Source: Octopus bimaculoides (lineage: Eukaryota). Taken from it: a stretch of 64,000 nt of DNA. This document shows positions 30,299 through 62,271 of this stretch, one piece after another. Position 1 is the first letter of the stretch, and every line of letters begins with the position of its first letter. Under the pieces are notes generated by a model. The model did not search any database and was not told the DNA's origin. It saw nothing but the letters and a program-made list of their open reading frames with translations. The position numbers and the translations under genes are program-made. Where the stretch lies: NCBI RefSeq assembly GCF_001194135.2, contig NC_068984.1, forward strand, positions 88,213,568 to 88,277,567. The letters are read 5' to 3'.

Positions 30299-33200
30299 AT
30301 GGCTGTGCTGAGAATAGGGTGTGTGAATGGGCGTGGTCTGGGATCAGCTTGGAAGCAAGGTCATTTGCTCAATGACCCCCCGCCCCAGGTCGCGTAATCT
30401 GGATGTGGCTGCTATTAGTAAAAGTAGAATCACCAGAAAATACGCTCTAGCATCCATTTTCGAGGACTACGGGGTATTCTCATCTTGTGCTCTATTGGAA
30501 TCGGGTGGAGGTGTAGCAGTGCTACTCCGGAAATCCTTAAATCTCCAAGTACGGGCTATCTTCCTGGACCCAGATGGTAGGTTGTGGTCCAGGACGTGAA
30601 TGGCAGCGAAGGTGGCGCCTTTAGATTGGTGGTCCCAACAGGGAGGAAGGCCAGACTTCTTTAGGCGTCTACAAATATTCTAGTGGGAGACTGGAATAGT
30701 ATTTTGGACGCACAAAAGGACTGTGAGTTTAGTACATAGTAGAAAGGAGGTGTAAAAGCCTCGAAAAATCTGCTCAGGGCTTTCCAGCTTTCTGACAAGT
30801 ACCGACTAGGTTTCTCAGATGTACCAGTGTAGACATGGAGCAACCACAGCGGGTCATCCAGATCGTATTTAGATAGAGTATTTGTTAGGTTAGAGGATAG
30901 GGATAACATAGGCTGTTCACAATTTAAAATCGTCGCCTACAGGGATCACAATTTTGTGATATGCTCAGTCGACTTAAATTGGATCCGTAGACAGGGACCC
31001 AGTAACTACAAGTTCAATGCGTCCTTAACAGCTCGCAAAATCTACAGGAACCGGATTAGTGAAATAGTTAAGCGGCAATTGACGGGGACTATCGTCAACA
31101 ACCAGAGGTGGATCGCTCTGACTGAGCGGTCGCGGTAGAATCGATTGTGTTTAGCAAGAACGAAATAGATTAGAGGGAGAACTAGTTAGCAAACTAGAGG
31201 AGGCGATTACTAAAGGCATCGCGACCGACGTGAATGGCCCTTGACTATTTCTTTGAGGCGAAACACGAAGGGTGCGTTGTCAGAGCTAAGGCCTGTGCGC
31301 TAAAACATGAAGGAACTAAAGACTTTTGATGGGCCCGGACGGTAGAGACGCCACGTGGAAACAAAACCACGTTCAAATCTTTGACGGATCAGAACGGACG
31401 CGTGCTATTCGGTTCTGAGCAGATGTGTGCAGCTTCCCAGCAGCACTTTGCGCGGCTGTTTTGGGGAGGGTGATGGGTCGACGACGGTAGCAGACATTAC
31501 TTCAAACCTAGACTGCCTACCACGGTTCTCGGTAACGGACGCGAGATTGTGCGAAAAGCCGATTACAGCCACTGAAATATGGGAGGTGATGAGTGATTGC
31601 ACAAGTCGCAAATCGTCCAGTTTGAACAGTCTGCCCTACGAATTCTATGTATTCATGCCAGATTTGTTTGGCAGCTTCTTGGCAGATGTCTACAGAACGG
31701 AAGAATTCCCAGTGCTGTTAGCTGGGGTATTGTAAAACTGCTGAGAAAAGACGTCGACAATGGGGACATGCTAGGGAATTTTTGACCCATAACTCTGCTA
31801 AACACAGAGTTTAAGACTTTGGCCAAGGTGTTAGCGAAAAGGTTGGTGCTTGTCGTTGGGGAAGCACAAACGTGTGCGAACCCGAGCAGGTCTATCCACA
31901 ACCTCCACCTTATGCGATGCATTGAAGAGAGGGCTGGGACTAAAGCTGGCTTTGATGGGGCTCTGATCGATTTAGATCAGTCGAAAGCTTTCAATAGGGT
32001 CGACCATCACTTCTTGGAATCCGTCATTAAAGTGGCTGGTTTCGGACCTGCTTTTAGAGGGTGGATTGCTGCAATGGACAGCTGCACCTGCTCAGTGTTC
32101 AAAGTAAATGGCCATCTATCGGAACCATCTAGTATCGCACGTTCAGTCCGTCAGGGCTGCCCTCTGTCACTTCGCCTGTATGTGCTGGAAGTTGAACTCG
32201 GTAGGTCAGTGTCTGCATACACGGACGACGTCACCGTCATGGTGTCGGACGCCTCGGAAGTGGAGACGGTTGGCTTCATTCTAGAAGAATATGAGTCGGT
32301 TGCAAGGATAAAATCAATGCCGACAAGTCGGTGGGATTGCGACTGGGCGCCTGGAGAGGCAGATCGATGCCGTAATGTTCGATGATCAAAGTAAATGGCC
32401 ATCTATCGGAACCGTTTAGTATTGTACATTCGCTCCGTCAGGGCTGCCCACTGTCACCTCTCCCGTATTTGCTGGCTCGTGAGCCATTGTTGCGGAAGTT
32501 GGAACAGTTAAGAGGCCATACACGGACGACCTCACCGTCATGGTGTCGGAATCCTCGGAAGTGGAGACGGTTGGCTCCATTCCAGAAGAATATGAGTCGG
32601 TTGCAGGGGCCAAAATCAACGCCGACAAGTCGGTTGGATTGCGACTGGAGATGCTGATCGATATCGTCGGACGCTGGACCGACAAATCAGTTAAACTGCT
32701 CGGGTCTAGTTTGATCCCAACCTCCAGGTGAATAAGAATTGGGAAGAGGGGACGAACAGTGTGGCCAGTCTTATCCAGAAATAGGCTGAGAGGAAGCTGT
32801 ACTAGAAAGGTCAGGCAGAGTTGGCGAATGCCTACATCGCCTCCGTTGTCATTTATCGTCTTAACGTCGTACCTTGCCCCAGTTATTGGAGCATCTTTTC
32901 TTCATATCCTTGTGGAAAGGACGCGTTCCAATGGTCAGATGATCAATCTGCTGTCAGCTCCCTCTGTGTGACGGCTTAGGCATGCTATGGCTTTTGATGC
33001 ACAGACATGTGCTCAGGTTGCGCCACCTGCAACGATGTCTAGAAGGTGAACGTTTGCGAATTACGTATTTCCGCAACTCGTCTCTGTCCTGAGATCAGTC
33101 TTGGGTGAAGGATAAACCAAGACTGGGCGTCTGGCACTTAGAATGTCATCAAGCGCTCACTGTCCTCTACCAGTCGAGCAATAGGATCGATGGATGTTCC

Positions 33201-34587: not shown

Positions 34588-35394
34588 ATGTCGTGGAAAG
34601 ATGTTCTGCATAATTTAACAGGGTTTTATGAACGAGAACAGCGGCAGAAAAAAGTAAGGAATTATTTGGAAAACCAATCATTTACTGCACAAGATCGTGA
34701 GGCAGTGATCGACTGGATGATAGCTTGTGTAGATCATTACGTAGTTTCTTTCGAAGTCTTTTATCTTGCAGTTTCTTATTTTGATATATACCTGTCTGGA
34801 AGAGACATAGAACCAATTACTTCCTCTAAGCTGCAATGTCTCGGAGCCTCATGTCTTTGGATTTCTTTTACTCGGTTAGGTCAAAACCAGGATAAACTGG
34901 CAAATTTTCTGGATATGGTATCAGTCACAGACCGGCACTCTAGTGAAAAGGACCTTTATGACATGTTTAGTCATATTATGACTCGATTCCACTACAAAAC
35001 GCATTTAATAACACCGTACAATTTTCTAACGAGCTTCTTTTTTATTCTCCATTTGGAACGTAAACACAATCTGAGATGGATGTCACGTTATATACTGGAG
35101 CTAGCGCATTACGATGCGGATATTTGTGTAAAAAATAGGTATAGACCGAGTCTAATAGCAACAGCTGCTCTTTACACAGGATTAGTAGCTTTGAGGGTCA
35201 CTGTTGATTGGATTTCTGACTTGTCTATTTTAACACCGTATACTGGAAAGGAATATGAATTTAGAATTGTTCATCGTCGGATGTTGAAATTATTAAAAGT
35301 CGCTTCTCCATCCAAATATAGGTCAGCATACACGAGATACAGCAGAAAAGAATATAATCACGTTGCTTTGGTTGATTTTTCATTTATTTATTAA
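34588..35394 (+). CDS. Intronless, divergent A/B-type cyclin-like protein (268 aa; cyclin N + C folds only)
   Basis: Cyclin-box pattern NYL..Q...DREAVIDWM (MRAIL helix), FYLAVSYFDIYL, KLQCLG, VTD, TPYNFL, YILEL, RPSLIATAAL, and a C-terminal AYTRYS...VAL. The ORF is uninterrupted, with an in-frame stop at 34495 and ATTAAA at 35434-35439. Confidence 0.85.
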   Translation: MSWKDVLHNLTGFYEREQRQKKVRNYLENQSFTAQDREAVIDWMIACVDHYVVSFEVFYLAVSYFDIYLSGRDIEPITSSKLQCLGASCLWISFTRLGQNQDKLANFLDMVSVTDRHSSEKDLYDMFSHIMTRFHYKTHLITPYNFLTSFFFILHLERKHNLRWMSRYILELAHYDADICVKNRYRPSLIATAALYTGLVALRVTVDWISDLSILTPYTGKEYEFRIVHRRMLKLLKVASPSKYRSAYTRYSRKEYNHVALVDFSFIY

Positions 35395-45139: not shown

Positions 45140-46093
45140 CCTCTACCAAAGTGTCGTAGAAATAAAAATGTCTATAACAATTATTCATGAAGCAGAATAT
45201 AAACTGAAAGATCTCGAACAAAATGCTTCTTGTTAAATTATCATTAACTTTATGTTATATATGAAACGAAATTTTTAAAAATACGATTTATTTTAATAAA
45301 CTAATAAAATTTAAGCTTTCTCGTCAAAACCTGTATTTTGATGTTCAAACAAGTTCATAGGTTGCTGTGTTATTTTTAATTTATTTCTTTTAAAGAAAAC
45401 ATTTTGTAGTTAATGCTCTGAGAATATATTGCAAGTTATAGTTTACATCATACAGCCAACCTTTTGAAGATCGCCGAAGATCCTTTCAGGTTCTTTGAAA
45501 ATGTTCGTGATACTGTATTTAATTCAATGCATACACATGTGCGTGTGGTTGCATACTTCATACTTATCGGAGACGTGTATATCTTGGATATTCTAAATAA
45601 AATAGGTTTCAATTCACATGGGTCAAATTTAGAATTAGAAACTGGGGGAGGAAGGGGGAAGAAACGTTTTGAAAGGAAAATGTATCGGAGATAAATATAT
45701 TTTCGAATAAAAATTATTTGTAGGTTATTAATGAAACAAATACTCCCACTTTTATACAGATGTGTAATTTAGTAATCAGCGACGATTTTAACAAATTATA
45801 GCCACAATTTGATTAGTAAGTATTTTGGAAAGTAATATCTAGAGGGGAAAAAAATCTGTTTTAATAATTTGCAAAATTAATTTTAATAATTCTAATACGT
45901 AACTTCCGCCTTAAAATGCCACTACACACGAACCAGGTAATGTCACAAGAAACCGTCTGAAAAAGGGGAAGAAAAGTGAAATTAAAAAGAAATAAATAAA
46001 TCTACAATATCTCCCATAATTCATCTTATTGCACTGGAGGGTTGTTTGCTTGTTCATGTCTCAGCTCCATAGTTTGGAGCGAGGTGTTATAAT
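45140..46093. promoter_or_regulatory. Putative divergent (bidirectional) promoter region
   Basis: CpG-containing, SINE-poor unique DNA between a minus-strand donor (~45138) and the plus-strand ATG at 46094. An ETS-like ACTTCCG and a YY1-like AAAATGCC lie at 45902-45920. Confidence 0.35.
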
Positions 46094-46109
46094 ATGCCCA
46101 AGATGAAAG
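46094..46109 (+). CDS. Exon 1 (coding part, MPKMK-G) of the mariner-derived chimeric gene
   Basis: ATG CCC AAG ATG AAA G|GTAACG, a phase-1 donor. Confidence 0.55.
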
Positions 46110-47410
46110 GTAACGTACAGTTAGCATGTAACAGTTGCCTGTAAGAATGTAACATGTTCGGTGATTTTGGCTGCTACATTTGCCTTCTGCTTGCCGTGCA
46201 TTTCCTCGTGGACTTATGTGTTGTATGTTTGCTTTGTACTACAAAATCTTCCCGTCGAAAAAATAGAACAGGCAGCCTGCATAGGCAGCCTGTGAATTCA
46301 TTCTCTCTCTTTAATAATAATACTTTTGCAATACACGACTTTAAAAAGGGTACTTTATTGTTTTAGTTAGTTTTAATTATAAGTTCATACATATGTTTAA
46401 TGTTCTAATAATTAAAATAACTGTTCTTGTCTATGCTTTTTTTTTCTTTCCTTTTTTTTCTGGAATGGCCTAATTGCTAGTCTGGGAACGTACTCTTGCT
46501 AATGTTCTGTAAAATAATTAACAACCATGCTTTTTATCGAACTAACAATTCCAATAATCATATATCTTATACTTGAAGAAATCAGAAGTAATTATTGTAA
46601 TTTCTTCTGTTATTATATTCTATAACCAAACATATTTTCAATAACTTAAGCTCTTTGCTCCGTGAAAATGTTCAATATACCGTTGTGTAGCCATACATCA
46701 TTCCTTTGCGCATCTTGCGAAAATACAGTATTTTTCTAACGAAATATTCAAAATTGGTCTTTTGTTTCTTGATTAAACTGTCTTTTCTTATTATTTTTAA
46801 CTGTAGGCTTATTTTGCATTCTAAAACTCATTTTTATAAGTGGACAACTTTATATTTTGCTAAGAAATCTGACGTAATTGATTCTTGTAAACTACCAAAT
46901 AATCGGTAAAAATATTTCACTGCTTGTACATGCCTTTTCTCAATGATATTTGTCATGCTTATTATTGGATTAATATTATCGTTAATCGGGAAATTTAATT
47001 AAGCTTATTTTTTGATTAGCAATAAAATGAATATCTTAATTTTGATTCCTAATTCTATACCAACACCTATGGTTTTTCTATATTCCTCGATTTTCCAATC
47101 TAACCCGATGAATTACTTGGTATTACTCTTTGCCGACTTGATTCACTATTAATTTCTTCGGATTGTTTTACAAAATTATTTGCCAGTCAAAACATTTTTT
47201 GTGATGTAAGTTTAGATAAACGCCTTATTCGTTATGGGAACACCTGTTCCCTATCTTAAGTGTAGATTTTAATCATTTAAATGTTTGTCTTGGCACAAGC
47301 TGCTTGATAACCGCTATGTGTTTTTTGACTGCTATGGGTTGCTGTAGGTAAGTATTTATAACCGATTGGAATTTCATTGAATACTTCGTATTTATACCTT
47401 TTATTTAAAG

Positions 47411-47460
47411 GTAAATACACTCAGAGGAGTGCAAGAAAAAGAGAATTTGAGTCCAGCTAT
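47411..47460 (+). CDS. Exon 2 (GKYTQRSARKREFESSY) of the mariner-derived chimeric gene
   Basis: Acceptor CCTTTTATTTAAAG| and donor TAT|GTAAGC. 50 nt, phase 1->0, open frame. Confidence 0.6.
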
Positions 47461-48101
47461 GTAAGCTAACGAAACGTTTCGCCAGTCACGGAGTGCTTAA
47501 CGCCTGTTGTTTACAGTGGTGGGTTTTTTTTCACCTCCCTTGTTAGGTAGGCTGACCAATTAAGCACTCGCTGGTTTGCCTGTAGCAAGACTAGAAACAC
47601 AAAAAGGTCGTGTAATCCACCGGAATAGTTATCTGCAGCTTGTGAGATCATTAAACCAACGTTGTAATACGACTGACCTCAGCTAACGAGTCGACAATAA
47701 TGCTAAAATTTCAATTTAGAAGTAAATAAAAAATTAAAGTATCTATGATGCGAAACACCAAAGTTAAGCAAACTTGAATTTATAGATATTATAAGCTTAA
47801 AAATTATATTTCTTTTTGAAATATTTTAAATTATTTCTTTAAATAATTTTTTAAAATTATTCCATTATTTTAGTAAAGCAAAGAAAACAATATCTTGTCG
47901 AGGTTTCTATTCAATTTATTTTCCAATAGGAGCTCAGTCTTAGCCATTAAATTTTAGTGTATAACAATTCAGCACTGATAGGTTTATGAGATTAACAACA
48001 AAAAAAACATTAGCTTTGGTTTCAACCAATTAGTTCTGGTGAGTTGCTAATCAAATCCCCTCCTTATTTGTATTCAAGTTTAAATGTTAGTAGGTATCGT
48101 C

Positions 48102-48199
48102 GGCAAAGGTAAAGAATACGCACACCACCCGTTTTTGGCGTAACCCTAAACTCTAGCCGTAATCCCAAACCCCGGGTGTGCGTATTCTTTACCTTCGCT
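48102..48199. mobile_element. Second Merlin-like MITE with telomere-like core
   Basis: 25-bp TIR GGCAAAGGTAAAGAATACGCACACC (inner 19 bp perfect). 9-bp direct repeat GGTATCGTC at 48093-48101 and 48200-48208. Interior TAACCCTAAACTCTAGCCGTAATCCCAAACCC. Confidence 0.7.
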
Positions 48200-49426
48200 G
48201 GTATCGTCATTGTTTCCTTTCACCAAATTAAATTATATAAAATATATTTGTAAAATGAGCACACATAACAGCAGAGTACAGACAGATATATCAAATAGCA
48301 TACAAAAAACATTCTTGATTTCTTTTGAATTATCTTCACCTCTCGAGGATGTGTTTTGGCCCCTACCTTTATACGGTAACCTTTTTTTATCACCTAACAT
48401 AAAGCTATCTCTCTCTCTACTGTATCCCATTCAGTCAAAGGGGTTCATAGTCTTGCAGATCTCACAAATTTTGGTTCCAGTAAAAGGACATAGTGCAATA
48501 GAAAATATACCAAAGCAAAGACTGAAGTACAGTGCAGTCCTTTCATCCAGTGTATTCTGTCAAACCATCCAATACATGCCAGTATAGAAGATAGATGTTA
48601 TATGATGATGTTTTATATATCATCATCCTCGTTTTATATTCATTTTCCATACTGACATGAGTTGGATGATTTGATTGGAGCTGATAAGAGCAAGGGTCAT
48701 ACCAGGCTCCATTGTCTGTTCTGGCATGGTTTCTACAGCTGGATGCCCTTCCTAACACTAACCACTCCACAGAGCATATTGGGTGCTTTTTATGTGGCAT
48801 CAACACCAATATCAATTGTTGTGTTGGACAGGTCTTCTTGAGTACAGCAATGTGCCACATATCTCAGTCCTTTGTCAGGCTCAGTGTCTTGAGATCAGCC
48901 TTCAGTACTTTATTCCGGGTCTCCCTCCTCCACAAGTTCAATCCACTTAGACACACCATGTGGTTTTGTATTCACTTCAGTTGCATGGCATCGTGGGCAA
49001 GAGTCTTCTCTTATAACCTCAAGCCAATCTAAACCTTGTGAGTAGATTTGTAGTTCATCCTTTGTGTGCATGTGTACCTTTTGTCTTGACATTACATAGT
49101 TGTTGTAAATTAGCATCATCTTCATAAAAGCAATCTTATTTTGTTTCCAGTCTTCTGTGAATTTTTTGTTTTTTTTTTGGCCATGAGAAGTATTATCTTG
49201 TTTGAAAACAGGTCAGAGTTGGTGGCAGGAACAGCATCTGGTGGTAAAAAAGATGTCTCTTCAAATTCTGTCTGACCCATACAAGCATGGAAAAGTGGAC
49301 ATTAAATTATTAAATGAAAATAATATATGTATTTTAAATAATTGATAGGAAAGACAGTGTACTATTATCTTTATTTAGCACAATGATCATTTTGGCTTAT
49401 ATCTTTTTATCTGCTCTGCTCCCTAG

Positions 49427-49487
49427 TGGGTAGGGAATGATATTATGGAACTGAATGCACCCCACATTGCAGAAGAAACCTCATCAG
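49427..49487 (+). CDS. Exon 3 (WVGNDIMELNAPHIAEETSS-) of the mariner-derived chimeric gene
   Basis: Acceptor TCTTTTTATCTGCTCTGCTCCCTAG| and a weaker donor CAG|GTTACA. 61 nt, phase 0->1, bridging exon 2 and the transposase exon. Confidence 0.45.
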
Positions 49488-51372
49488 GTTACATAATACG
49501 TTACAGTGTTATAATATGTACATTTCGCTATCATCATTTTATATCTGCTTTCCATGTTGGCATTCGTTGGGCAGTTCTTCACAGTCACGTTCAGTTGTAT
49601 TCAGCATACTTCCATCTGAGATTGGTCAGGCAACCACATATCACTCATGCATTTCATTTTTGGCTTTGTTTCTGTGGGCGAACACCTTTTCCAACACCAA
49701 CCACTTTACACTCAGAGAACTGTGGTCAATCCAGGACTATAGCAGAAGACACTTGCTCAAGGCATCACACACTGGAAACTGAACTTGAAACCATGTGGTT
49801 GGGAAGACCTATATACATATGCATATATATATATATATATATATAGTTTTAGGGAAAATAACCAATTTTCAAGAACTCATCGATGAAAATCCACTATCAC
49901 ATATAGAAAAATTAATAATTAAAAGCACAATAAATGAGTATAATATAAAGTAAAGTAAATATCATAAGATAAATATAATAAAAAGATTACACGTGTTTCA
50001 TAGCCAATTATAAAAATATATATATATATATATTTCCCAAAATGGAGATGAACACCATTCCTCTATGTGATTGGCTTGAAAAATTAAGATATTTTTCTAT
50101 CTTTCTTAATATAAAACCAATGGTAACCAATACACAAATAAAGAATTTCTGTCCACACTCATTTTCATCATTCGACATTTACATATATATGCCTGTGTGC
50201 AAACAGCTATGCTACATGGCAGTGAAAATGGGCTGTGACAGCCGAGGACATGCATAGGCTTGAAAGAAATGAAGCCAGTATGCTTCACTGGATGTGCATG
50301 TTTGACAGTGTAAGCATCTTGAGAGAAAAGTTAGGCATAAGAGACATCAGATATGGTGTGCAAGAGAGACAAATGCACTGGTATGGCATGTAATGCATAT
50401 GGACAAGGACGTCTGATTCCTAACTATGGAGGGAACCTGTGGTAGAGGTAGACCCAAGATGATGTAGTGAAGCATGATCTCTGAACTTTGGGTTGCACAG
50501 AAGTAATGACTAGTGACTGACACTTTTAGTGATATGTTCTGCTTGAGAAGACCCATCAAGTCAAGTGAAATCACAGTTGTGGCTAATACTAGTATCACGT
50601 AAGTGGCACCCATGCAGGTGGCACATAAAAAGCACCTTTTGAGCGTTGAGCCTCATGGAGGCAAAGTGGTTGAGCTCTTTCAAATGTCGGGCCTCACAGA
50701 GACAATGACTGAGACCTTTGGCATTATGTTGTGCTTGAGAAGAAGGACCATCAAGCCAAGTAAAATTGTAGTCATGGCAGATACTAGTGGCACGTAAAAG
50801 CACCTTTTGAGTATTGGGCCTCATGGAGGCAATGACCAAGTCCATTTGGCATTATGCTGGGTTTGAGAAGACCCATCAAGCCAAGTAAAACTGCAGTCAT
50901 GGCAGATACAGTGTCACACAAATGGCACATAAAAGCACCCATTACACTCTTGGAGTGGTTGGCGTTAGGAAGGGCAAACTGTTTTCCCTGTTATACAAAA
51001 AAAAAACCCTTTTAGCTGCAAAACTAAAAAATAACTATACCTTCTTTTATACAAAAAAAACTTGAAGCATGTGACTCCTTTTTCTCAATCATCTTTATTA
51101 CGTTTGTTATACATGTTTATGTAAATTATATATGCCAAACTCACCTTTAAAATACCAATATAATTTCAGCTAAGATGTGATATAAGAACACTTATTCTGT
51201 GAAAAAAAGTATTGTTATATTTTTATTTGTCATACATAGCATTAAATGATTTTTCACTTGTGTTAAGAAGTTAAACTGGTTTTAATTACACAGCATAAAA
51301 CTAATACACCAGCTTGTTGTTCCCACACCCGTCTTTTTTTGTTTTCTGTACATTTGAACTTATATATATTAT

Positions 51373-51599
51373 TTAAACCTTTTGTTACCATATTTCTGTT
51401 GAGATGCTCTGTGTTTCTTTCAATTAATTTTAAATATAACAAAGAATTTAGTAAAATAACTTAATCATTAAGATAGTTTTAGGAATATAAATTGTGACTA
51501 AGGTTTGATGGAAGATTTTAATTCAGAACTTTTGAAAACAAGACATTTGTGCTACAGAACCAGAAGCGGTTTCAGGTGGGTTGGTATCAAAAGAGTTAA
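51373..51599. mobile_element. piggyBac-like MITE
   Basis: TTAA-ACCTTTTG...CAAAAGAG-TTAA termini. A related fragment lies at about 905-990. Confidence 0.55.
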
Positions 51600-51749
51600 T
51601 AAATACAATATTTGTTTTATATGCTACTATTAGTTCCATGTGATGAGAGCATGTCATGTAGATTGTTAAACCCAGCAGGGACTGAAATTGGGCTTGTAGT
51701 TAAAAAAAAAATACTAAGAAACATTAATAATAAAATTAAAGAGACCAAG

Positions 51750-52980
51750 TTTTACTGTAATAATTTGGTTCAAGAACATTAAGAATAGGCATACTCAGTT
51801 TGACATAGATTTTTATCCCTCCATACCAAGATCGCTACTTGATAAAGCCATCAAGTTTGCTAAATCATGTGTTGATATAGACCCTGTAGACCTAAGCTTT
51901 ATCATCATATGAGGAAAACACTACTGTTTAGTAAGAGCTCAGCATGGATAAAAATGTTGGATAATGATGAATTGTTTGATGTATCAATGGAATCATGTGA
52001 TAGTGCTGATGTCTGTGATCTTGTGGGTCTCTGTATTAAACACATTGAGATCTAATGATGTTGGTCTATACCGAGATGACAGATTGGGTATTTCCCATGG
52101 CTGTAATGATCACACCCTAGATAAATTTAGGAGGCAACTTACTTCAACTTTCAGTCAATTAGGCCTTAAAATCACAGTTGCTACTAATCAGTCTAAAGTT
52201 GATTTTTTAGATGTTTCCTTAGACCTGAACTCCTCTTATAAACCTTATCATATGCCCAATGAGAAACTTTCCTATATACATAAAGTCTTGTCACCCTCTA
52301 GAATTTAAAAATCTAATTGCTAACATTAGTAACAGAATTTCTAACCTTTATTCCTCTAAAGAAATTTTCAAGAAGGCAGCCACCTACTACAGCAGTGCCC
52401 TAACAGTGGCTTTAAGGATGAATTAATATATAACCCCTCTAATATTAATAGGAATAAAAATAATAATGACCCAGGAAAATACCCCCCCCCCCTCCATTAA
52501 TGTAAAAACTAACATAGGTAAAAGATTCTTGTCTCTCCTAGACAAAACATTTTCCAGAAAATCACAGGTATGGGAAAATATTTAACAGGCATACAGTGAA
52601 ATTATATAGCTGCTGCCCCAATATGAAAAGCATCATTACATGAGAACAACATCAAGAGCCCTCTCCCAGTTGTAACTGTCGAGACCCAGGAACCTGTCCA
52701 CTCAACCAGGGATATATGATTAAATCTCATATATGAGGCAGAAGTTACAGCAATGCAATATGATAACACAACCTTTAAGAAGAGCTTTATCAGACTGTGA
52801 AGGCAAATTCAAGAATCACTATTCTAATCACATATCTTCCTTCTGACACAAGTACAAAAAAAAAGTAAAGCTAGGAACATATGGGGTTTGAAGTTGAAAA
52901 ATCCACAACATATGTTAACGGATCAAAAAATGTAAGCTATGCATAGCTGAAAGAACTAGGATCTAAAAACACTAACACTG
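51750..52980 (+). mobile_element. Degenerate Penelope-like element (RT and GIY-YIG remnants)
   Basis: FDI..FYPSI, LFDVSM...D.ADVCDLVGL, VGLYRDD.LG and KVDFLDV.LDL...YKPY..PN motifs, followed by a CNCRDPGTCPL region. Confidence 0.8.
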
Positions 52981-53666
52981 CTGAATTCTAGATCCAAAAT
53001 TTTCAGTAGTTGTAAGCAAATGGCTAAGTTCCTGTTGATGAATTGGAAAGTGCTGTCCTTTCTGGACTGAACAACTAGACTCTAAGCTGCTGTCTTTTCA
53101 GACTTATAGTTTACAGTCGAAGGGGAGAGTACTCTGATCCCCCTCTCTTTTGTTTCTTTGTTTTCCAGTTTTTCAACCTTCCACCTTCTTTCTCAATGTT
53201 TCTCTTATCCTATTGTCCCATTTTTAGTTGTTATGTCATATGGACAGTGCTTGAAGGTTGTGCTAGGACACCAGATGTTAAAAAATACTGTCTAGCATGT
53301 TCTCATCACATGAAACTAATAGTAGCACATAAAAACATTGTGTTTATTAAATAATATTTATCTCTTACCAGGTAGAGTACTTTTTTTGTTGATCTTACTA
53401 TCACAAAACAGTACACCATACACATACATATAAAATGTTATATATATATATATAACATTTTTCCATTTTCTTCATTAAAATATATAATACCATACATTAC
53501 TGCTGTGTTAACTAGGCTTCCTATTGAAAGGTTACTGGCATATGTAATCTAAAGTACTTCGGTTAAGTCTTGTTTTGTGATTTGGACAATCAGTGTTGTG
53601 ATGTTGCTTTTGTGCAGTAGTTAGTATGAGTATATAGATGTGCATATATATCTATCTATACATATA

Positions 53667-53976
53667 TGTATAAAAGATCGTGGGTAAGGCCAAAACAATG
53701 CGAAGTAAATCACAAGAAAACTAATATGTGAATTAAAGTAGACTTACTTTGTATACAGTATTTCGGGGTTATGACCCCCATTTTCAAAAAATTGATGAAT
53801 GTTGCCAATGTGTGTGTGTGTGAGCGCTCATGCACATCAGCAACATTCGTCAATTTCTTGAAAATGGGGTCATAACCCCAAAATATTGAATACATGGTAA
53901 GTCTACATTAATTCACATATTTGTTTCTTGTGATTTACTTCGCATTGTTTTGGCCTTACTCACAATCTTTTATACA
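53667..53976. mobile_element. Foldback MITE with ~130-bp inverted arms around a (TG)n spacer
   Basis: 53667-~53797 (TGTATAAAAGATCGTGGGTAAGGCCAAAACAATGCGAAGTAAATCACAAG...) pairs with ~53841-53976. Confidence 0.85.
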
Positions 53977-54411
53977 ATATATTCTACACAATGCTTCACA
54001 GTAATTATTCCATATATATATATATATATTACTCACACACATGGATATGTATGCATATGTATATTAAATTCCATAAATTTGTGAAGTACAAGATTTTTTA
54101 GAGACTTTATATGCAATTCTGATGAACAGAAACATTTTCTTCATTGAAGGGACCCATTCAAAAAGTTACATTTCTTCCTCAATGTGTAAAATATTTTCTC
54201 TATTTTAATTTTCTGCATTACTTTTCACTGATGCAGAATTTCACTAGTTTCTTTCAATTCTACTGCTTCACTATTTATTCTTAAAGTAAGAATTATTTTT
54301 CTGTATTGTTTTGTTCTCGATTATATGTATATAAATATTCATTTTAAGAATTTTTTTAAAGAAACATTTTAAGAGTTCTTTTGTGATGTCCTTTTTTTTT
54401 TTTTTTTCCAG

Positions 54412-55496
54412 AACTTGATAAAATTAGGCTGCAGAGGCAAGTGTTTTCTATGAAACTGCAAAATCGAGACTTTCGAGACATGATATTCTTGCATTACTGT
54501 GAAGGAAAAACTATTGCTGAATCCCAAGAGGTACTTCATGAAGTATTTCAAGACCAAAGCCCCCCATATTGTACTGTTCAATTTTGGTTTAAAGAATTTG
54601 AACAAACTAATGAATGTGCGGATAGTGAAATTCTTAACACAACTGTCACCCCTCAAAACATTGAAGCAGTTAAAATGTTATTAAAAGAAGATTCTAGAGT
54701 GACTTATAAAGAGTTAGAAAGTGTATTGAATATTGGATCAGAAAGTGTTCGGTCAATCCTTCATGATTATTTATATGTTCGCAAACTAAATATGTGCTGG
54801 GTTCCTCAAATCTTAAGTGAAGAGCAGAAGTTGGCCAGAATGGAATGGTGTGAGTTTATGCTAAAAAAGTTTCAAAATGGAGCACATCAGAAAATTGAAA
54901 ATATTGTTCTTGGAGTTGAATCCCAACTTTATCAATATACTGAATCTAAAAAGCCATCTACAGTATGGACTTTCCTCGATGAAGATTACTATCTTAAATG
55001 GAAACATCCACCAAATATACAAAAAAAAACAATTGTAAATTTTTTTAGTAAATCTGGCAACCTTGCTACTATTTTACTCAAAGACAAATCCAAAGTTAAT
55101 CCTAGTTGGTATTTAACAAAATGTTTACCTGAATTATTTGAAAAGATCAAAGAAGTAAGAAAAGATTCTGGACTCCAAGGTATTCTTCTCCATCATAGTA
55201 ATATAAATGTTCTTACTGCTGCAGTGACTATGGACTGTCTTGCTGAGAATAGCATTCAATTAATTACACATCCTGCTCACAGTCCTGATTTATCTCCTTG
55301 GGATTATTTTGTATATCCTAAAGTGAAAAAAGATCTTATTGGAATTAAATTTAACAAGCCTGGAGATGCTCTTGGTGCATTTATTCAAGCTACTACATTG
55401 CTAACCCCTCAAGATTGGATTGAATGTTTTGAAAGCTGGTTTAAACATATGGAATTATGTGTGGAATCTCAAGGGAACTATTTCAAAGTAACTTGA
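54412..55496 (+). CDS. Terminal exon: catalytically degenerate mariner (DD34D) transposase-derived protein, probably domesticated
   Basis: Uninterrupted ORF with two HTH-like regions, WVPQIL (WVPHxL), HSPDLSPWDY (YSPDLAPxDY) and a C-terminal CVESQGNYF. Catalytic positions are V159, S253 and D288 (34-aa spacing). A poly(T)-CCAG| acceptor lies at 54411, the frame is open from it, and no TIRs are visible. Confidence 0.85.
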
Positions 55497-58400
55497 TTAT
55501 ATGATATTTTTTTTTATATGCAGAATGAAACTAAACATAAATATGTTTAAAAAAAGAAAAGAAGTTGTTTTTTTCAAATTACCTTCTTACCAAATTATTA
55601 GATTTTGTTTATGTAAAAAAAAAATTTTTCTAAATGTATTGTAATTGTTAGATTAGTTCATGAATGTCTTTATAATGACTTTTTCTGTGATAGTATGTTT
55701 TTTTTATAATAGAAATATATTTTTCAGTTGAAGAAGAAAACCTCACTAATTATATATACTAAATATAATATTAACACTTGAAAATCTGAAAAATATTGAA
55801 TCGTAGGAAAATGTTCAAAGAAGTTTTAAGTTTAAAAAGAAACCCACCAACTTTGAATCAAATCTTCAATCTCAGTGAATATTCAGAGGTTTATACTGAG
55901 TAAAGGAGCTTGTCGGTTATTATGAAGGCAGCTGTTTTCTAGCTACTTGATCTACTAGAAAAAAGCAGCCAAATTTCCATCAAACTGCATAATATACCTT
56001 CTTAAAAGCAAAAAATGCATTAGATACACACTACATCTGAAGTAAAAAAAAGATGGGATGGTCACAACTAGAATGCTTTTGATCACAGATCTATTTGCTC
56101 ATTTTGGGCTGACCTGAGCTAAACAACCACAACAATATCATTGTAAAAATATTGGCTATATTATTTATATTATCTAAAGCTGTCTTTTAAATTTCATCAG
56201 TTACCTTCATTCAGATATATGTGAAACAGATTCAGGATTTCACGCATTGAAAGAATTGCTTGTGAAACAAAAACTTGCTTACTGTTTACTGCATTAGATG
56301 GTGTTTGACTCAAGACAGCTTGCAGGATGCTTTTGTAATGTTTCAGGTTTTCTAGTTTACAAAAGTAGAAATAAGAACCCTGTTCTCAGTGTTTTGTTTT
56401 GCTTTTTAATTATTTATTTTGATTTTTTTTTCTTTTCATGTTGCATGGGTTAAATGGGTTTGCAATATATTTTTCTATTTGTCTCATTTCTGTAAGGCTC
56501 CCCAGGTGTAGCCTAACTAATTCTCAAGTCTTCCTTGGTTTGATTCCAAAATAAATATTCTCCACCATCACTTCACTGCGCTTTCACTCAGCAAGCATCA
56601 GTCATTTACATTAGTATTGACCTATGCTTTGATATGCAGTTACTTTCTCACTTCATATTTTTTGTACTTCCACTAGATTACAATCAATCATTTTTCTCTA
56701 GTCACTGTAGTTTCTCTGCTTTCACTGCTATACATCTTTTACACAAGCTTGATATAGCCTTGCTCTCATACAGTGGGTGGAAATCCTTTATTACCAACAG
56801 ACATGCCTTCTCTAATCTCCCTACTTCCAAATCCCAATCACTATGCTGCCATTGACTCTACATGTAGCTCTAATTATATCATCTAGTTAGCAGAACTTAT
56901 CTATAACTTCCAACAAACAATTTAAACTATTCATAGTCCACAGTGCATCATAGCTGCTCATACTGTCATTTTCTTTATGTTCTTTTCACTTACACTATTA
57001 ATTTTATGATGTCAATCTCTGCACAAATCTCACTACACTTCCTGAATACACAGTATTGTGCTCCTGTACATTTTCTGAATGTCAAAAAATGTTACACTCT
57101 TGATTTTGATTGGAATTTTGTGATCAAGAATTAATTTGTTGCCTGTCAGTCCTTTTAACTCTAGCCTGAGATAGAGTTGATTGCAAAACCTTCATGCTCA
57201 AAAGTAAATTACTACTGTGACACAAACATATTTTGAAAGTTTCAGTAATTTTTACGGAAGGTCTTAAGTTCTCCTTTTATGTCATAAATTGCTCAACTGA
57301 TCTCTGCTGCAGACCATATTCCATGCTGACACTTGCATGCCACTTTCTTTTCTTTGTCTCTGGGAACAAATTTTTTTTCTCATCCTAATCAGGATTCCTC
57401 ACAATACAGACCTAAACATATCACTCATTTTAGCTTCATCTTTTGCAGTGTCCAACTGAGTAATTTTCTGTTCATTCAGCTGTCTTTCTTTATATAAGTA
57501 GTTGTGCTTATCTTGTTTTTAGTTTGAACTCATCTAGCATTATTTTGATTTGAGGCACATTCCTTTCCAGAAAAGAAAAAGAAAAAAAAATTAGTTCATA
57601 ATTGTTAAACCCTTAATCAGAAGAATATTAATCAAGATCTCATTCTCACCTAATTGGTGAAAAACCTGTTTTTTGGCTTGCTCTCAGAGGTTTGTATTAT
57701 AGATACTGAATTGATTTTCTTCACAGAACTCCAGAAACCTTATGATGCTTAGAATATTGATTGGCAATACAACAGGCACCATGATACTCACTAAATATAT
57801 GTAGGATTAACAAACAGTAGAATTGATTTTATGAGGCTCTAATGAAAGCTAAGCTGTCAAAATAGGACCATCATAATCCCAGCTGAAGATTTCAGTGGTT
57901 GTAGCAAAAAATAACAATAGATATTCAAGTATTGGTTGATGATTGAAAGCTGCTGAATAAATTTATACATTTTAAAGATAATCTGTAAAAAATTTCATAT
58001 ATCATGTAAAACTTGATTCATACTTTTTTTATTTTAAAGATTTCTAAGATGCTGCTAAATTTTGAAGCAAAGTCAGTTTTTCAGCTTAAAAAAATACATA
58101 TCTGTTAATATATATTCAACAAAACATATAGCTTAATTTTTTTTTTACATATACATCACAGATCATGTCTTCTCTAAATATTTGCTATGATAGTTTTTTT
58201 TAAAATTTACTCCATGCATCTTCTGGTCATCCTTCACCATAATTTAAGAAAATGTTTTGAATCATTCTTGCTTGCAGACAGTGTAAGTATAGCAATTAAC
58301 TGTGAATGGAGCAAATGTGCTTCATTGTTGTAATTGTATCACTCATTATAAAAATCATACTTATTTCATTGGAAGAGATGTTAACCTGGTTCTTGTTTTA

Positions 58401-59869
58401 ACTGTTTAGGGCAATATTCAATGTAAATCAGAAAATAAAAACTTACAAATTCCTTAATGTGCTGTTGATATATTTTGTTCTAAATGCCAGCATAAACTTT
58501 TGAGAAAGTTTTTATTCTACTTCATTATTTAAATGACCCTTTTGTTTCTTTTTGACTGTGAAATCTTTCCCTAAGGAATCTGTTGTCTCCCACTAATCAG
58601 GTTTACCAAGCCAACAAAGAGTGCAACACTCAGTCACTCAGCATGTTAAAACGTAGCAATCAAATCTCCCTCAAATCACATCCTATCATCTTCAATGGCT
58701 CAACAGGAAAATAAAAAGAACTGCTACAAATATTATTTGCTTTAGTTCATAGTAAGAGCAAAATATCAAGATCGAATCAGTTGTCTATTAGTGAAGCAGC
58801 TGTTGAATTATCTTAAGTAAATTGTAAATTTTTTTTTTTAATTAGTCTCTTGAATAAACTTCCAATGTAACCAGTTTTACTGACTCTAGAATGCGAATGT
58901 CATACTCGTTATGATGGGACAAATATAAGTTGACTACACTGTATGCAAGCCAGACAACTTCTGCCAGCAAGCTGTCTTGTTCTTATGCTATATTATTTCT
59001 AACAAAATGAGTCTCAATAAACTGAAAAATCATTATTGAGGTTTTTGAAGTTAGCATGTCTTTGAAACTCATTCATTAACTTGAAAATTTTGATTAGTTT
59101 TCAATATTAATATGAAACATTTTGCAGGGACTTTAAAGTAGGGAAATGTATATTACCATTTAATAGTTGATAGTCAAAAAGGTTAAGTTCTATCACAAAG
59201 GTGCAAGTAAAGTCATATAAATTTATTTCTAATATATTGTCCTTGAGGCTATGTATTCAAGTAATTGAAATGCTCTAACTACTATGCAAGCTAGACCTTG
59301 AACTGTTTGACTATTTTTCAGTTTCTAGCATATCCCTTCTTTTCTGTTGCAGAAATATCTGTTTCACATGACAATTCATAAAATCACTTTGGTATAACTC
59401 CCCAACTTAACTAACAAACTTCATTATGTTATGGCAGTCCAGTCTACGTTGTGACTTTACTTGTAAAAACAGCTGAACTCTGTGGTTCAGACTTCAGACT
59501 TTATAACATCCATGGCATTACACTTCAGTATTTTACTGCACAACTTCTATACTCCAAATGATGGAATGGACATAATGAAATTGATGGTTTAACTTCACAG
59601 CTAGCAGTTATTCTTTTAATTTTGTGGCCAAATTTTCTATCAATCATTTGCAGTGTTCCAACTGTATGAGACTCATACTTTGCATACCCCTGCCAAACTA
59701 ATAAAATCCCTTCTTGATATTCCTTCATTAGTACCAGTTCTACAAATTCACATGATACATGCATATTTTTATCCATACCATGTATGTAGTCATCATTTGC
59801 AATGGAAAATGTTAAGAAATATCTTTGAGTTGCCTATTAAGATTCTTCCATAAGTCAGCAACTCTTTCT

Positions 59870-60376
59870 TTAACTGTTTCTTGAGACACAAGAGGTTTGG
59901 TATTTTTTCTTTTTTTTTTGTTTTGTTTTAGCAAAATCTTTTGCACCTATCAACCTACATTTCTTTATAGTTAACCTGCCTTTGATGTTGCTGCACCTCT
60001 TATGTGTCCATAGCTTGCACCGGGTACATCTTATAGAGTTACTACCTACTCCTTTTCTACATACTGAGCAGGGCCATCTACCTGAAGGGGTTTGTGTTTT
60101 ATCTACCTTCCTACTTATTAGGATTTTGGTTTTAGCTAGGTTGACTCTAAGGCCCTTCAATTCTAGACCTTGCTTCCACACCTGAAACTTCTCCTCTAGT
60201 TCTGATAGTGACTCCGCAATTAGGGCAAGGTCATCAGCATAGAGGAGCTCCCAGGGGCAACCTGTCTTGAACTCCTCTGTGATTGCCTGGAGGACTATGG
60301 TAAATAAGAGGGGGCTGAGGACGGAACCTTGGTGGACCCCTACCTCTAATATATTTGAAGCTTTAACCAGTCTCAC
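59870..60376 (-). mobile_element. RTE-clade LINE RT fragment
   Basis: VGVHQGSVLSPLLF...WELLYADDLAL...GLRVNLAKTKIL and downstream WPCSVCRKGV.SNSI.C..C..W.HKRC. Confidence 0.9.
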
Positions 60377-60549: not shown

Positions 60550-62271
60550 TAGATATTTTCATTATTGATAGATGAGAGTACGGACATCTCAGTGACATAA
60601 ACCTTAGCAATAGTTGTTTGCTTTTTTGATGAATCGCTTAATGTCAACGATGCTCTTCCGGATACAATTGTAGTAGAAAATGATTTGTCTCAGGGTTTGT
60701 ACGATGCTGTTAAGTCTACGCTTACAGAAGAAGCTGCATCTATGAGCAACATACTTGGATTTGCCAGCGACAATTGCTCAACAACGATGGATAACAAGAG
60801 CGGGTTTCAAAAGTTATTGAGAAACGATATTCCAACGGTATTTACAATAGGCTGTGCCATTCGTTTGCACTTTGTTCAAATCATGCTGTGAAGGTGTTAC
60901 CTTCGTATCTCCAGTCCTTTTTAAAGAACTTAACTTCTTACTTTTCTCGAAGTAGCAAACGTCAAAATGACTTCAATAGTGTTGTTGGTACAAAAGAAAA
61001 CAAGATTCCAAAGCTTTCGAAAACTAGATGGTTGTCGCGTGAAAATGTAATTAACGTTCTACTAGAACATTTGGATGCCCTTGTACTTTATTTTCAGTCA
61101 GAGGCTAAAGTAGAAAAAATGGACGGAGCAAAAAGGGTATATGAAACAATGATTAACAAAGGGACAAAGCACGTGCTGCTCTTCTTACATTATGCTCTTA
61201 ATGTTGAGTTTCATTTGGAACACTTTCGACTGCATCTGTTGCATAAATTCGTATCCAGTGAATATAAAAGTATCCTTTCTTGCTTTATAAAAGAGGATGT
61301 TTTAGCTGTATCTAAATTATCAGATATTGATCTTAATAACATAACAAATCAAAAAGATATAAATGATATTTACCTCGGTGGACGCGCAATGAGATATCTA
61401 GAACAAAACCCAATCGTTGGTGACTCAGCTAGATTCAAAACAAATTGCAAAACTTTTTTAATAGAATTATGTTCTCAAATAAAAATGCGCTTTCCTCTCG
61501 ATGAAGCTGGAGTGTTTGCTCTCTTAGAAACACTTGAACCAAAAGTAGCGCACGATCTTACTAACTCTCCTCAGTCGATAATCCCCTTGGCATCAAACGT
61601 TCCAGCAATTGCATCAGGAAACACACTTGATGAACTAGACGATGAGTGGAGATTATTTCGGCAACATAAAGATATTCCTGTTTCCTCAAAAAGCATCCCT
61701 GAATTCTGGTATTCCATGCGCAATCTTAAAGACGGGCTTGACCACTCTAAATTTGAGAGGCTGTCACAATTCATGACTAATTTAACGGTGTTACATCATT
61801 CACCAGCATGGGTGCAGCGCATATTTTCCCAAGTAAATTGCACAAAGACAAAGTTCACTGATAGGTCGAAGGCCAAATCGATCACCGATTGTCTACTCGC
61901 TAAACAAGCAATTACAAAAAAGGTAGCATCATGCATTTCTTGGGAGCCGAACGCTAAACTTATTAAAGATGTAGTGGATGGGTTTTGTCATCATAGATAT
62001 ACGAGTGGATTGAGCCTCAAAAAGGAAGAAAATGAGTCTATCGCCATTGAAGGAGTGGATGAAGATGATGTGAATATGTATAAAATTGACAATTAGCTGC
62101 CATATGATATAAAGTAAGTATTAAATTCTATATTCATTTTGACATATAACATATTTTATCATTAAATTACCAATTATATACCTTTCTTTTAATATCTGGG
62201 TTTATAAAATAGGATCTGGGGTTTTTTGCAGCAAATAATCTGGGTGTTTTATTTGATGACTGGCAACCTTA
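60550..62271 (+). mobile_element. Decayed hAT transposon (transposase C-terminal two-thirds plus right end)
   Basis: FSLLIDESTDISVT* (first D), GFASDNC (second D), frameshift at the CxxH, KLSKTRWLS, and a dimerisation domain with VQRIFS (E>Q). Three subterminal ATCTGGG repeats and a TIR-like TGGCAACCTTA at 62261-62271. Confidence 0.85.

Follow-up and report, generated by a model that had tools for sequence, protein, structure and literature searches.

What maintains a mariner transposase reading frame when two of its three catalytic aspartates have been lost? This question is raised by a 64,000-nt stretch of Octopus bimaculoides DNA (contig NC_068984.1, positions 88,213,568 to 88,277,567, hereafter the window). 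A first-pass annotation, made from the sequence alone, had proposed that it contains a domesticated, catalytically dead mariner transposase spliced to three novel host exons, a SETMAR-like chimera of 403 aa. We find that the mariner-derived gene at 54412-55496, here called gene A, is very probably a domesticated, catalytically dead host gene with two coding exons. That this identity and structure go together with a non-catalytic role, taken as a joint claim, is also likely, if somewhat less assured. In incirrate octopods (Octopus spp. and Argonauta), gene A is conserved at a single syntenic locus, and it belongs to the known class of domesticated transposases acquired by SETMAR-type capture.

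On the plus strand, positions 54441-55496 form an open reading frame (ORF) of 351 codons without a stop, as originally described, and the frame is open further back to a CAG acceptor at 54409-54411. At about 30% G+C, 361 codons without a stop would arise by chance with a probability of about 1e-13. The product matches the Pfam family HTH_48 (Mos1 transposase helix-turn-helix, HTH) at 4.5e-8, over the gathering score; Pfam Transposase_1 was not detected in the product by the same Pfam scan. In sequence searches, Mos1 transposase aligns with the product end to end (E 2.8e-21), residues 12-112 of Mos1 being the part aligned with its paired HTH, and the transposase part of human SETMAR is similar to it at E 4e-11. 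Both HTH bundles and an RNase H-like fold, which a structural check had been suggested to look for, are present in an AlphaFold2 model obtained from a shallow alignment of 8 sequences (mean pLDDT 75.5), the HTH part being composed of two three-helix bundles. Using this model, Foldseek retrieved Mos1 transpososome chains (E 1.4e-17) and the catalytic domains of SETMAR and Mos1, with TM scores of 0.82-0.87 and an rmsd of about 3 A (0.87 and 2.9 A, respectively, for SETMAR).

Catalytic and motif columns were read from a Mos1-anchored alignment (Table 1). The intact DD34D metal-binding triad, a hallmark of active mariners, is absent from gene A. Two catalytic aspartates are replaced, in IVLGVE and HHSNI, and the third position is kept at a spacing of 34, exactly as noticed by the first-pass annotation. 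The triad reads V/S/D in three Octopus species and V/S/E in Argonauta, with 93 and 34 residues between its positions, compared to 92 and 34 in Mos1. With both replacements found in all four species, the earlier assignment of a catalytically disabled protein is upheld. The other motifs were also correctly read at that stage: the GRP linker is missing, as part of a 4-residue deletion, WVPxxL is kept as WVPQIL, and SPDL is kept within HSPDL, the counterpart of the mariner YSPDL motif. No terminal inverted repeats (TIRs) were found around the ORF, as had been reported, since the region 53900-56100 contains only AT-rich or low-complexity chance pairs. No other mariner-like sequence was detected in the 64-kb window or in five fetched loci, each gene A locus carrying one gene A copy, and the many TIR-flanked copies which had been named as a warning sign were not encountered in these sequences.

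The first protein search, word-indexed and performed with a single sequence, matched only two protein clusters; a profile search was added. The first cluster includes a Logan contig protein (P0001, 94-95% identical) together with two O. vulgaris proteins, CAI9721526.1 (366 aa, P0003/P0004 set) and CAI9721525.1 (413 aa), the O. vulgaris orthologue showing 98% protein identity to gene A. The second contains GAB1597971.1 of Argonauta hians (P0002, 361 aa, 85-86% identical). Judged by cluster membership, the database has no additional octopus isoforms. These orthologues are recorded as hypothetical, as 'Mos1 transposase HTH domain-containing' or as 'serine-rich adhesin for platelets-like isoform X6'. 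The last name, given to GAB1597971.1, is misleading and was probably copied from a S/T-rich model of another octopus in which SMARCE1 is joined to the mariner paralogue B (see below).

Syntenic orthologues, one of the checks proposed together with the original prediction, were found in O. vulgaris and A. hians, where the gene order cyclin, exon 1, mariner exon is the same as in the window. The window and the O. vulgaris locus (L003) are collinear over more than 25 kb, with non-coding DNA about 86-91% identical. With the Argonauta locus (L001), only three collinear blocks were observed: the cyclin gene (34588-35394), the exon 1 region (45784-46150) and the mariner exon (54394-55516). Around the latter, conservation between Octopus and Argonauta starts 18 nt before the acceptor and ends 20 nt after the stop. 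Nucleotide identity of the mariner exon is 98.6% with O. vulgaris, 95.6% with a further octopus represented by a Logan contig (L002) and 84.4% with A. hians, for flanks which are 86-91% identical, 69-82% identical and unalignable, respectively. The frame is intact in 4/4 species, so that none of them carries a disabled orthologue.

By the Nei-Gojobori method, the comparison of the window with Argonauta gives a dS of 0.81, a dN of 0.063 and an omega of 0.078 (bootstrap 95% CI 0.051-0.117). When each part is taken separately, as had been recommended, the N-terminal DNA-binding part has an omega of 0.05 and the former catalytic domain one of 0.09, neither value being near 1. Differences fall 34, 20 and 102 times on first, second and third codon positions, respectively, and a Fisher test of synonymous versus non-synonymous changes gives p = 8e-46. 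Purifying selection is strong on the leader, on the HTH domains and on the RNase H-like domain. As judged from its sequence, the gene A protein is without a canonical two-metal active site, yet it is constrained over its whole length. Since the catalytic domain is strongly constrained although its active site is gone, the dead RNase H fold must serve some non-catalytic purpose, for instance dimerisation or the binding of a partner.

The same data bear on the reading that the ORF is simply a young or still-mobile mariner copy, left intact by a recent insertion. A full-length transposase-like ORF of typical size is what such a copy would show. However, the same syntenic site is occupied in species at a dS of about 0.8, the copy is single within the window and the five fetched loci and has no TIRs, and two catalytic aspartates are lost in all species. 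By synteny, dS, TIR absence and catalytic loss, this reading is ruled out, its probability being close to nil. What stands is a domesticated mariner transposase, as first proposed: syntenic, TIR-less, single copy in the sequences examined and with a dN/dS of about 0.08. This domestication is independent of SETMAR and older than the split between Octopus and Argonauta. The split is placed at least 29 million years ago by a fossil constraint (PMC12682272), and a dS of 0.8 suggests that it could be much older.

The connection between the mariner exon and the host gene structure was then read from the orthologues. Exon 1 lies exactly where it had been placed at the outset, at 46094-46109, and matches the O. 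vulgaris and A. hians models; with its flanks, it is the same in Octopus and Argonauta at 24/24 nt. The poly(T)CCAG acceptor predicted at 54411/54412 is conserved in 4/4 species, as a pyrimidine tract followed by CAG/AACTTGATAAA (here and below, a slash marks the splice junction). Three annotated orthologue proteins, two from O. vulgaris and one from A. hians, start with MPKMK/ELDKIRLQ, which corresponds to exon 1 joined straight to this acceptor. The same junction made in the window results in an open coding sequence of 1101 nt (366 aa). Indirect evidence that gene A is transcribed and spliced as a host mRNA comes from the two O. vulgaris isoforms, which PASA contributed to the annotation on the basis of Iso-Seq and RNA-seq data (PMC10700109), and from the GINGER model of A. 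hians.

In O. vulgaris, the 413-aa isoform is spliced from a donor located in the last codons (NYFK/GTAACT, window 55487/55488) to two extra downstream exons. In the window, the corresponding segments (about 58220-58282 and 59335-59439) carry an indel and a stop, and the donor GT is missing in the L002 octopus and in Argonauta. Not being conserved, these extra exons were rejected as coding and are taken as non-coding or noise.

The acceptor is located 38 nt upstream of the ancestral ATG, and active relatives initiate at a Met aligned with window position 54450. Translation could thus begin at this internal ATG, on a transcript unspliced or otherwise spliced, in which case exon 1 would be irrelevant. 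The Met is a good one, placed where active relatives start, and the O. bimaculoides paralogue B (XP_014783185.1) is modelled in this way, as a stand-alone protein of 353 aa. However, the leader between acceptor and ATG differs between Octopus and Argonauta by 3 synonymous and 0 non-synonymous changes, which argues that it is translated. In addition, it is in frame in both paralogues A and B, and no variation is seen in exon 1, its donor or the acceptor. An internal start is therefore improbable, and we retain translation from exon 1 through the leader into the mariner exon.

The two other exons proposed within the intron fared less well. The four segments do have GT-AG ends and compatible phases, their sum of 1212 nt and their stop-free translation were reproduced, and exon 2 clears a splice-site filter of moderate strictness. 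Nevertheless, neither exon 2 nor exon 3 rises above chance: AG..GT segments of 30-200 nt number 4332 in the 8.3-kb intron, 926 of them are open if entered in phase 1, and 71,243 segment pairs restore the frame equally well. In O. vulgaris, where the surrounding intron is about 90% identical, exon 2 has lost its AG acceptor and its initial 8 nt to a 12-nt deletion. Exon 3 belongs to a segment (49374-50188) which carries pieces of dispersed repeats and is without orthologous sequence in that species. Neither exon was detectable at the Argonauta locus or in any orthologue gene model, the O. vulgaris and A. hians models skipping both. Splicing of 46094-46109, 47411-47460 and 49427-49487 to the mariner exon, to form the 403-aa chimera, is thus most unlikely, even though the two segments may be species-specific alternative exons. 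Three novel host exons and a 403-aa product have to give way to a direct junction of exon 1 and a product of 366 aa, as in the orthologue models, and the basic N-terminus resembling a nuclear localisation signal (NLS) fell with exon 2, on which it depended.

Two observations concern the surroundings of exon 2. The 60 nt right after it (47461-47521) are 100% identical to O. vulgaris, compared to about 90% in the surrounding intron. Exon 2 itself was considered as a decayed eIF1A exon 2, on a weak resemblance (GK...KRE...F..E...Y), an idea which was dropped.

Table 1. Features of the gene A locus, in window coordinates
Feature	Position	Strand	Evidence or remark
Conserved upstream region, putative promoter and 5' untranslated region (UTR)	45784-46093	+	blastn to Argonauta L001 9718-10051; three-species alignment
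Coding exon 1, ATGCCCAAGATGAAAG (MPKMK + 1 nt, phase 1), donor GTAA	46094-46109	+	Orthologue models, alignment
Intron, 8.3 kb	46110-54411	+	10.7 kb in O. vulgaris, 3.55 kb in Argonauta (exon positions in L003, L001)
Conserved intronic non-coding element, about 60 nt, about 82% identical to Argonauta	46459-46519	+	Stops in all three frames
Proposed exon 2, unsupported	47411-47460	+	Acceptor deleted in O. vulgaris; no Argonauta match; in no orthologue model
Proposed exon 3, unsupported	49427-49487	+	Within 49374-50188, absent at the O. vulgaris orthologous site
Polypyrimidine tract and CAG acceptor	54394-54411	+	Kept in four species; paralogue B has its acceptor at the homologous position
Mariner-derived coding exon, 361 codons + stop	54412-55496	+	Nucleotide identity, dN/dS 0.078
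Coding leader (E)LDKIRLQRQVFS before the ancestral transposase start	54412-54449	+	13 residues; probably former 5' UTR of the element
HTH1 (Pfam HTH_48)	54450-54608	+	92% identical, Octopus vs Argonauta
Ancestral Met codon	54450-54452	+	Aligned start of active relatives
Inter-HTH linker, 4-residue deletion including the GRP motif	54624-54647	+	Alignment with relatives and Mos1; pLDDT <50
HTH2	54648-54791	+	93% identical, Octopus vs Argonauta; helices in AlphaFold2 model
WVPQIL, equivalent of the WVPHEL motif	54798-54815	+	Mos1-anchored alignment
RNase H-like (former catalytic) domain	54816-55493	+	Foldseek; dN/dS 0.09
Val at the Mos1 D156 position (IVLGVE)	54915-54917	+	Val in 4/4 species
Ser at the Mos1 D249 position (HHSNI)	55197-55199	+	Ser in 4/4 species
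Asp at the Mos1 D284 position (PWDY)	55302-55304	+	Glu in Argonauta

Beyond the coding exons, other blocks of the locus are conserved. Upstream of exon 1, the block 45880-45930 includes an ETS-like ACTTCCG near 45.89 kb and, after it, a short upstream ATG as well as a CAG/GTAATG site, in a block conserved with Argonauta; it may represent a core promoter, an upstream ORF or an alternative donor. Neutral sequence is saturated between Octopus and Argonauta, unlike the intronic element 46459-46519, which may be a regulatory or splicing element. No Rfam family matched between 44 and 58 kb, where an intronic RNA gene had been sought behind the conserved blocks.

Exon 1 has a possible relative nearby. 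In Argonauta, the next gene downstream of the mariner exon, 8 kb away and on the same strand, is eIF1A. Its own exon 1 (L001 22519-22534), ATGCCGAAAAATAAAG/GT encoding MPKNK, has 16 nt and phase 1, as does exon 1 of gene A, and the two share 30/38 nt when flanks are counted (E 6e-4, search space 0.8 x 0.9 kb). From this resemblance, exon 1 may have arisen by duplication of eIF1A exon 1 or be an alternative form of it, which we regard only as a lead, and a local duplication may have supplied both the promoter and the start codon. The length, the phase, the near-identical sequence and, in Argonauta, the common strand would also fit a larger eIF1A-type unit, of which the mariner exon would be an alternative terminal exon as in CSB-PGBD3, and exon 1 may then splice onward to eIF1A exons. 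However, the match is short, Argonauta eIF1A has its own exon 1, and the two genes are joined in no model. Moreover, a search for eIF1A exons was negative for the window, to its end at 64 kb, and for the 15 kb downstream in O. vulgaris. Such a unit appears unlikely compared to a gene A of its own, made of exon 1 and the mariner exon.

The closest relative of gene A came from an exhaustive representative protein search, with 6199 mariner-type matches. The best of these, at 48% identity, was O. bimaculoides XP_014783185.1, annotated 'SETMAR-like' (paralogue B); ordinary mariners in this search were at most 37% identical to gene A. The 90% cluster of B also includes A. hians GAB1609329.1 (1243 aa). 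The B loci lie outside the window, at 10001-11062 of L005 for O. bimaculoides and 3001-38542 of L004 for A. hians. Between these two species, B has an omega of 0.062 at a dS of 0.70, indicating purifying selection. Relative to other mariners, A and B group as sister clades. B keeps D/D/D (IVVEDQ, HHDD, PCDY) as well as an SRP linker.

In both species, B is located directly downstream of SMARCE1/BAF57 on the same strand, 1.4 kb after the S/T-rich last exon. The N-terminus of GAB1609329.1 matches human SMARCE1 with an E of 6e-89, and Pfam recognizes HMG_box and HTH_48 in this protein. The A. hians model connects the SMARCE1 S/T-rich exon to B through a 15-nt microexon; the O. bimaculoides counterpart of this microexon is apparently 14 nt long, which would cause a frameshift. 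The S/T exon has kept its phase-1 donor (G/GTAGGT) in O. bimaculoides, and a direct splice from the S/T exon to the B acceptor is in frame in both species. On these sequence features, B is probably spliced to SMARCE1/BAF57.

The acceptor position is common to A and B, and their leaders are homologous, differing in length by an in-frame indel of 6 nt: CAG/AACTTGATAAAATTAGGCTGCAG... is translated as ELDKIRLQRQVFS-M in A, and CAG/AGCTTGACAAAGTTAAGCAGCAG... as ELDKVKQQTNLSVFT-M in B. The simplest reading would be one domestication and exonisation, followed by a duplication before the Octopus-Argonauta split. Alternatively, A and B may stem from two separate insertions by a single family of elements with a cryptic acceptor. 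Comparison of Octopus with Argonauta gives an HTH identity of 86-98% within each paralogue, and A and B share only 41-59% in these domains, a divergence consistent with different DNA targets.

In Mos1 and SETMAR, the paired HTH binds DNA, and dimerisation involves HTH1 together with the WVPHEL, clamp-loop and catalytic-domain interface. By analogy, the gene A protein would form a dimer binding DNA in a sequence-specific manner through its paired HTH. It would be unable to cut or join DNA, and the dead catalytic domain would be kept as a dimerisation or interaction scaffold. The loss of the GRP minor-groove linker suggests, by the same comparison, a changed binding mode. We give even chances to the product acting as a DNA-binding regulator.

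Because B shares the acceptor and the leader and adjoins SMARCE1/BAF57, a chromatin-related role of gene A is plausible through this kinship. More speculatively, A might heterodimerise or compete with B. A functional tie of gene A to paralogue B or to BAF is nonetheless doubtful. Slightly more doubtful still is a two-gene module, in which the SMARCE1-fused B would tether the BAF remodeller to mariner-type DNA sites via its HTH, and A would be its dead, free-standing partner or competitor. If true, a transposase would thereby have rewired chromatin regulation in a manner specific to cephalopods.

Several points weigh against the view of gene A as a two-exon host gene for a non-catalytic, DNA-binding protein. 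The loss of GRP could mean weakened rather than retargeted DNA binding, and no clear classical NLS was seen in the product. The junction of exon 1 with the mariner exon, as we draw it, relies on annotation models made by other groups. In addition, the A. hians GINGER pipeline took O. vulgaris proteins as homology evidence (PMC12682272), so that the two models are not fully independent. Finally, single-sequence and profile word-indexed searches, of limited sensitivity and with limited squid, cuttlefish and vampire squid content, returned three octopod clusters and no orthologue outside octopods.

In the literature searched, we found no prior description of gene A or its orthologues as a domesticated transposase, and a survey of transcription factors derived from transposable elements (TEs) in Octopus did not cover mariner or HTH_48 (PMC10027918). 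Gene A appears unannotated or misnamed in current records, those of its orthologues being only hypothetical or misnamed, and its correct model has two coding exons and 366 aa. New here is the 48%-identical paralogue B, likewise conserved in octopods and linked to SMARCE1/BAF57. In a cephalopod lineage with TE-rich genomes and regulatory novelty, gene A and the SMARCE1-linked B form a concrete, testable candidate for transposon-derived gene regulation.

Other features of the window were recorded as well. The intronless cyclin gene (34588-35394, plus strand), which encodes 268 aa with Pfam Cyclin_N and Cyclin_C, is conserved in synteny in both O. vulgaris and A. hians, with 68% nucleotide identity to Argonauta. 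For an intact 402-aa ORF at 60888-62096 (plus strand), Pfam gave no match, even at E = 1. Alignment of this ORF to O. vulgaris (L003 31402-31966) is limited to its 5' part, and its C-terminus is hAT-dimerisation-like by eye. Reverse-transcriptase fragments (Pfam RVT_1) from decayed retroelements were found at 31819-32385 (plus strand), coinciding with a GC-rich stretch at 30-34 kb, and at 59870-60376 (minus strand), the latter with a PHD-like finger. Runs of N (assembly gaps) are located at about 23.5-24.3 kb, 28.9-29.3 kb and 36.2-36.5 kb.

How does gene A compare with known systems? With active Mos1, it shares the domain order and the fold, from HTH1, linker and HTH2 to WVPHEL and the RNase H-like domain. 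It differs by its low identity (24%), by Val and Ser at D156 and D249, by its shortened linker and by the absence of TIRs. In contrast to Mos1, it is also a spliced gene with orthologues and a single copy in the sequences examined. With CSB-PGBD3, an alternative 3' terminal exon of ERCC6, it has in common a transposase exon with its own acceptor, located within or after a host transcription unit and joined in frame to one or more upstream host exons. That transposase, however, is of the piggyBac superfamily and is attached to a large functional host N-terminus, whereas gene A has only exon 1.

To our knowledge, well-documented domestications of true mariners (DD34D) are rare, and SETMAR of anthropoid primates is the textbook case. 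In SETMAR (Metnase), a fusion of SET with Hsmar1, the mariner was captured as a 3' coding exon via an acceptor upstream of its ATG, and gene A was likewise captured via an acceptor upstream of its own start codon. Both loci have lost their TIRs, and both genes are under purifying selection with the HTH and RNase H-like folds kept. Gene A comes from a different mariner subfamily (about 22% identity) and its GRP linker is deleted. Its V/S/D(E) triad, compared to DDN in SETMAR, makes a residual nuclease activity of the SETMAR type unlikely. No in-frame host domain lies upstream of the transposase in gene A, its host part being only the 5 residues MPKMK. Of the SETMAR-like chimera announced by the first-pass annotation, the capture by splicing from an upstream exon stands and the domain architecture does not. 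In this respect paralogue B is the better analogue of SETMAR, as it carries a candidate host domain, the HMG box of SMARCE1.

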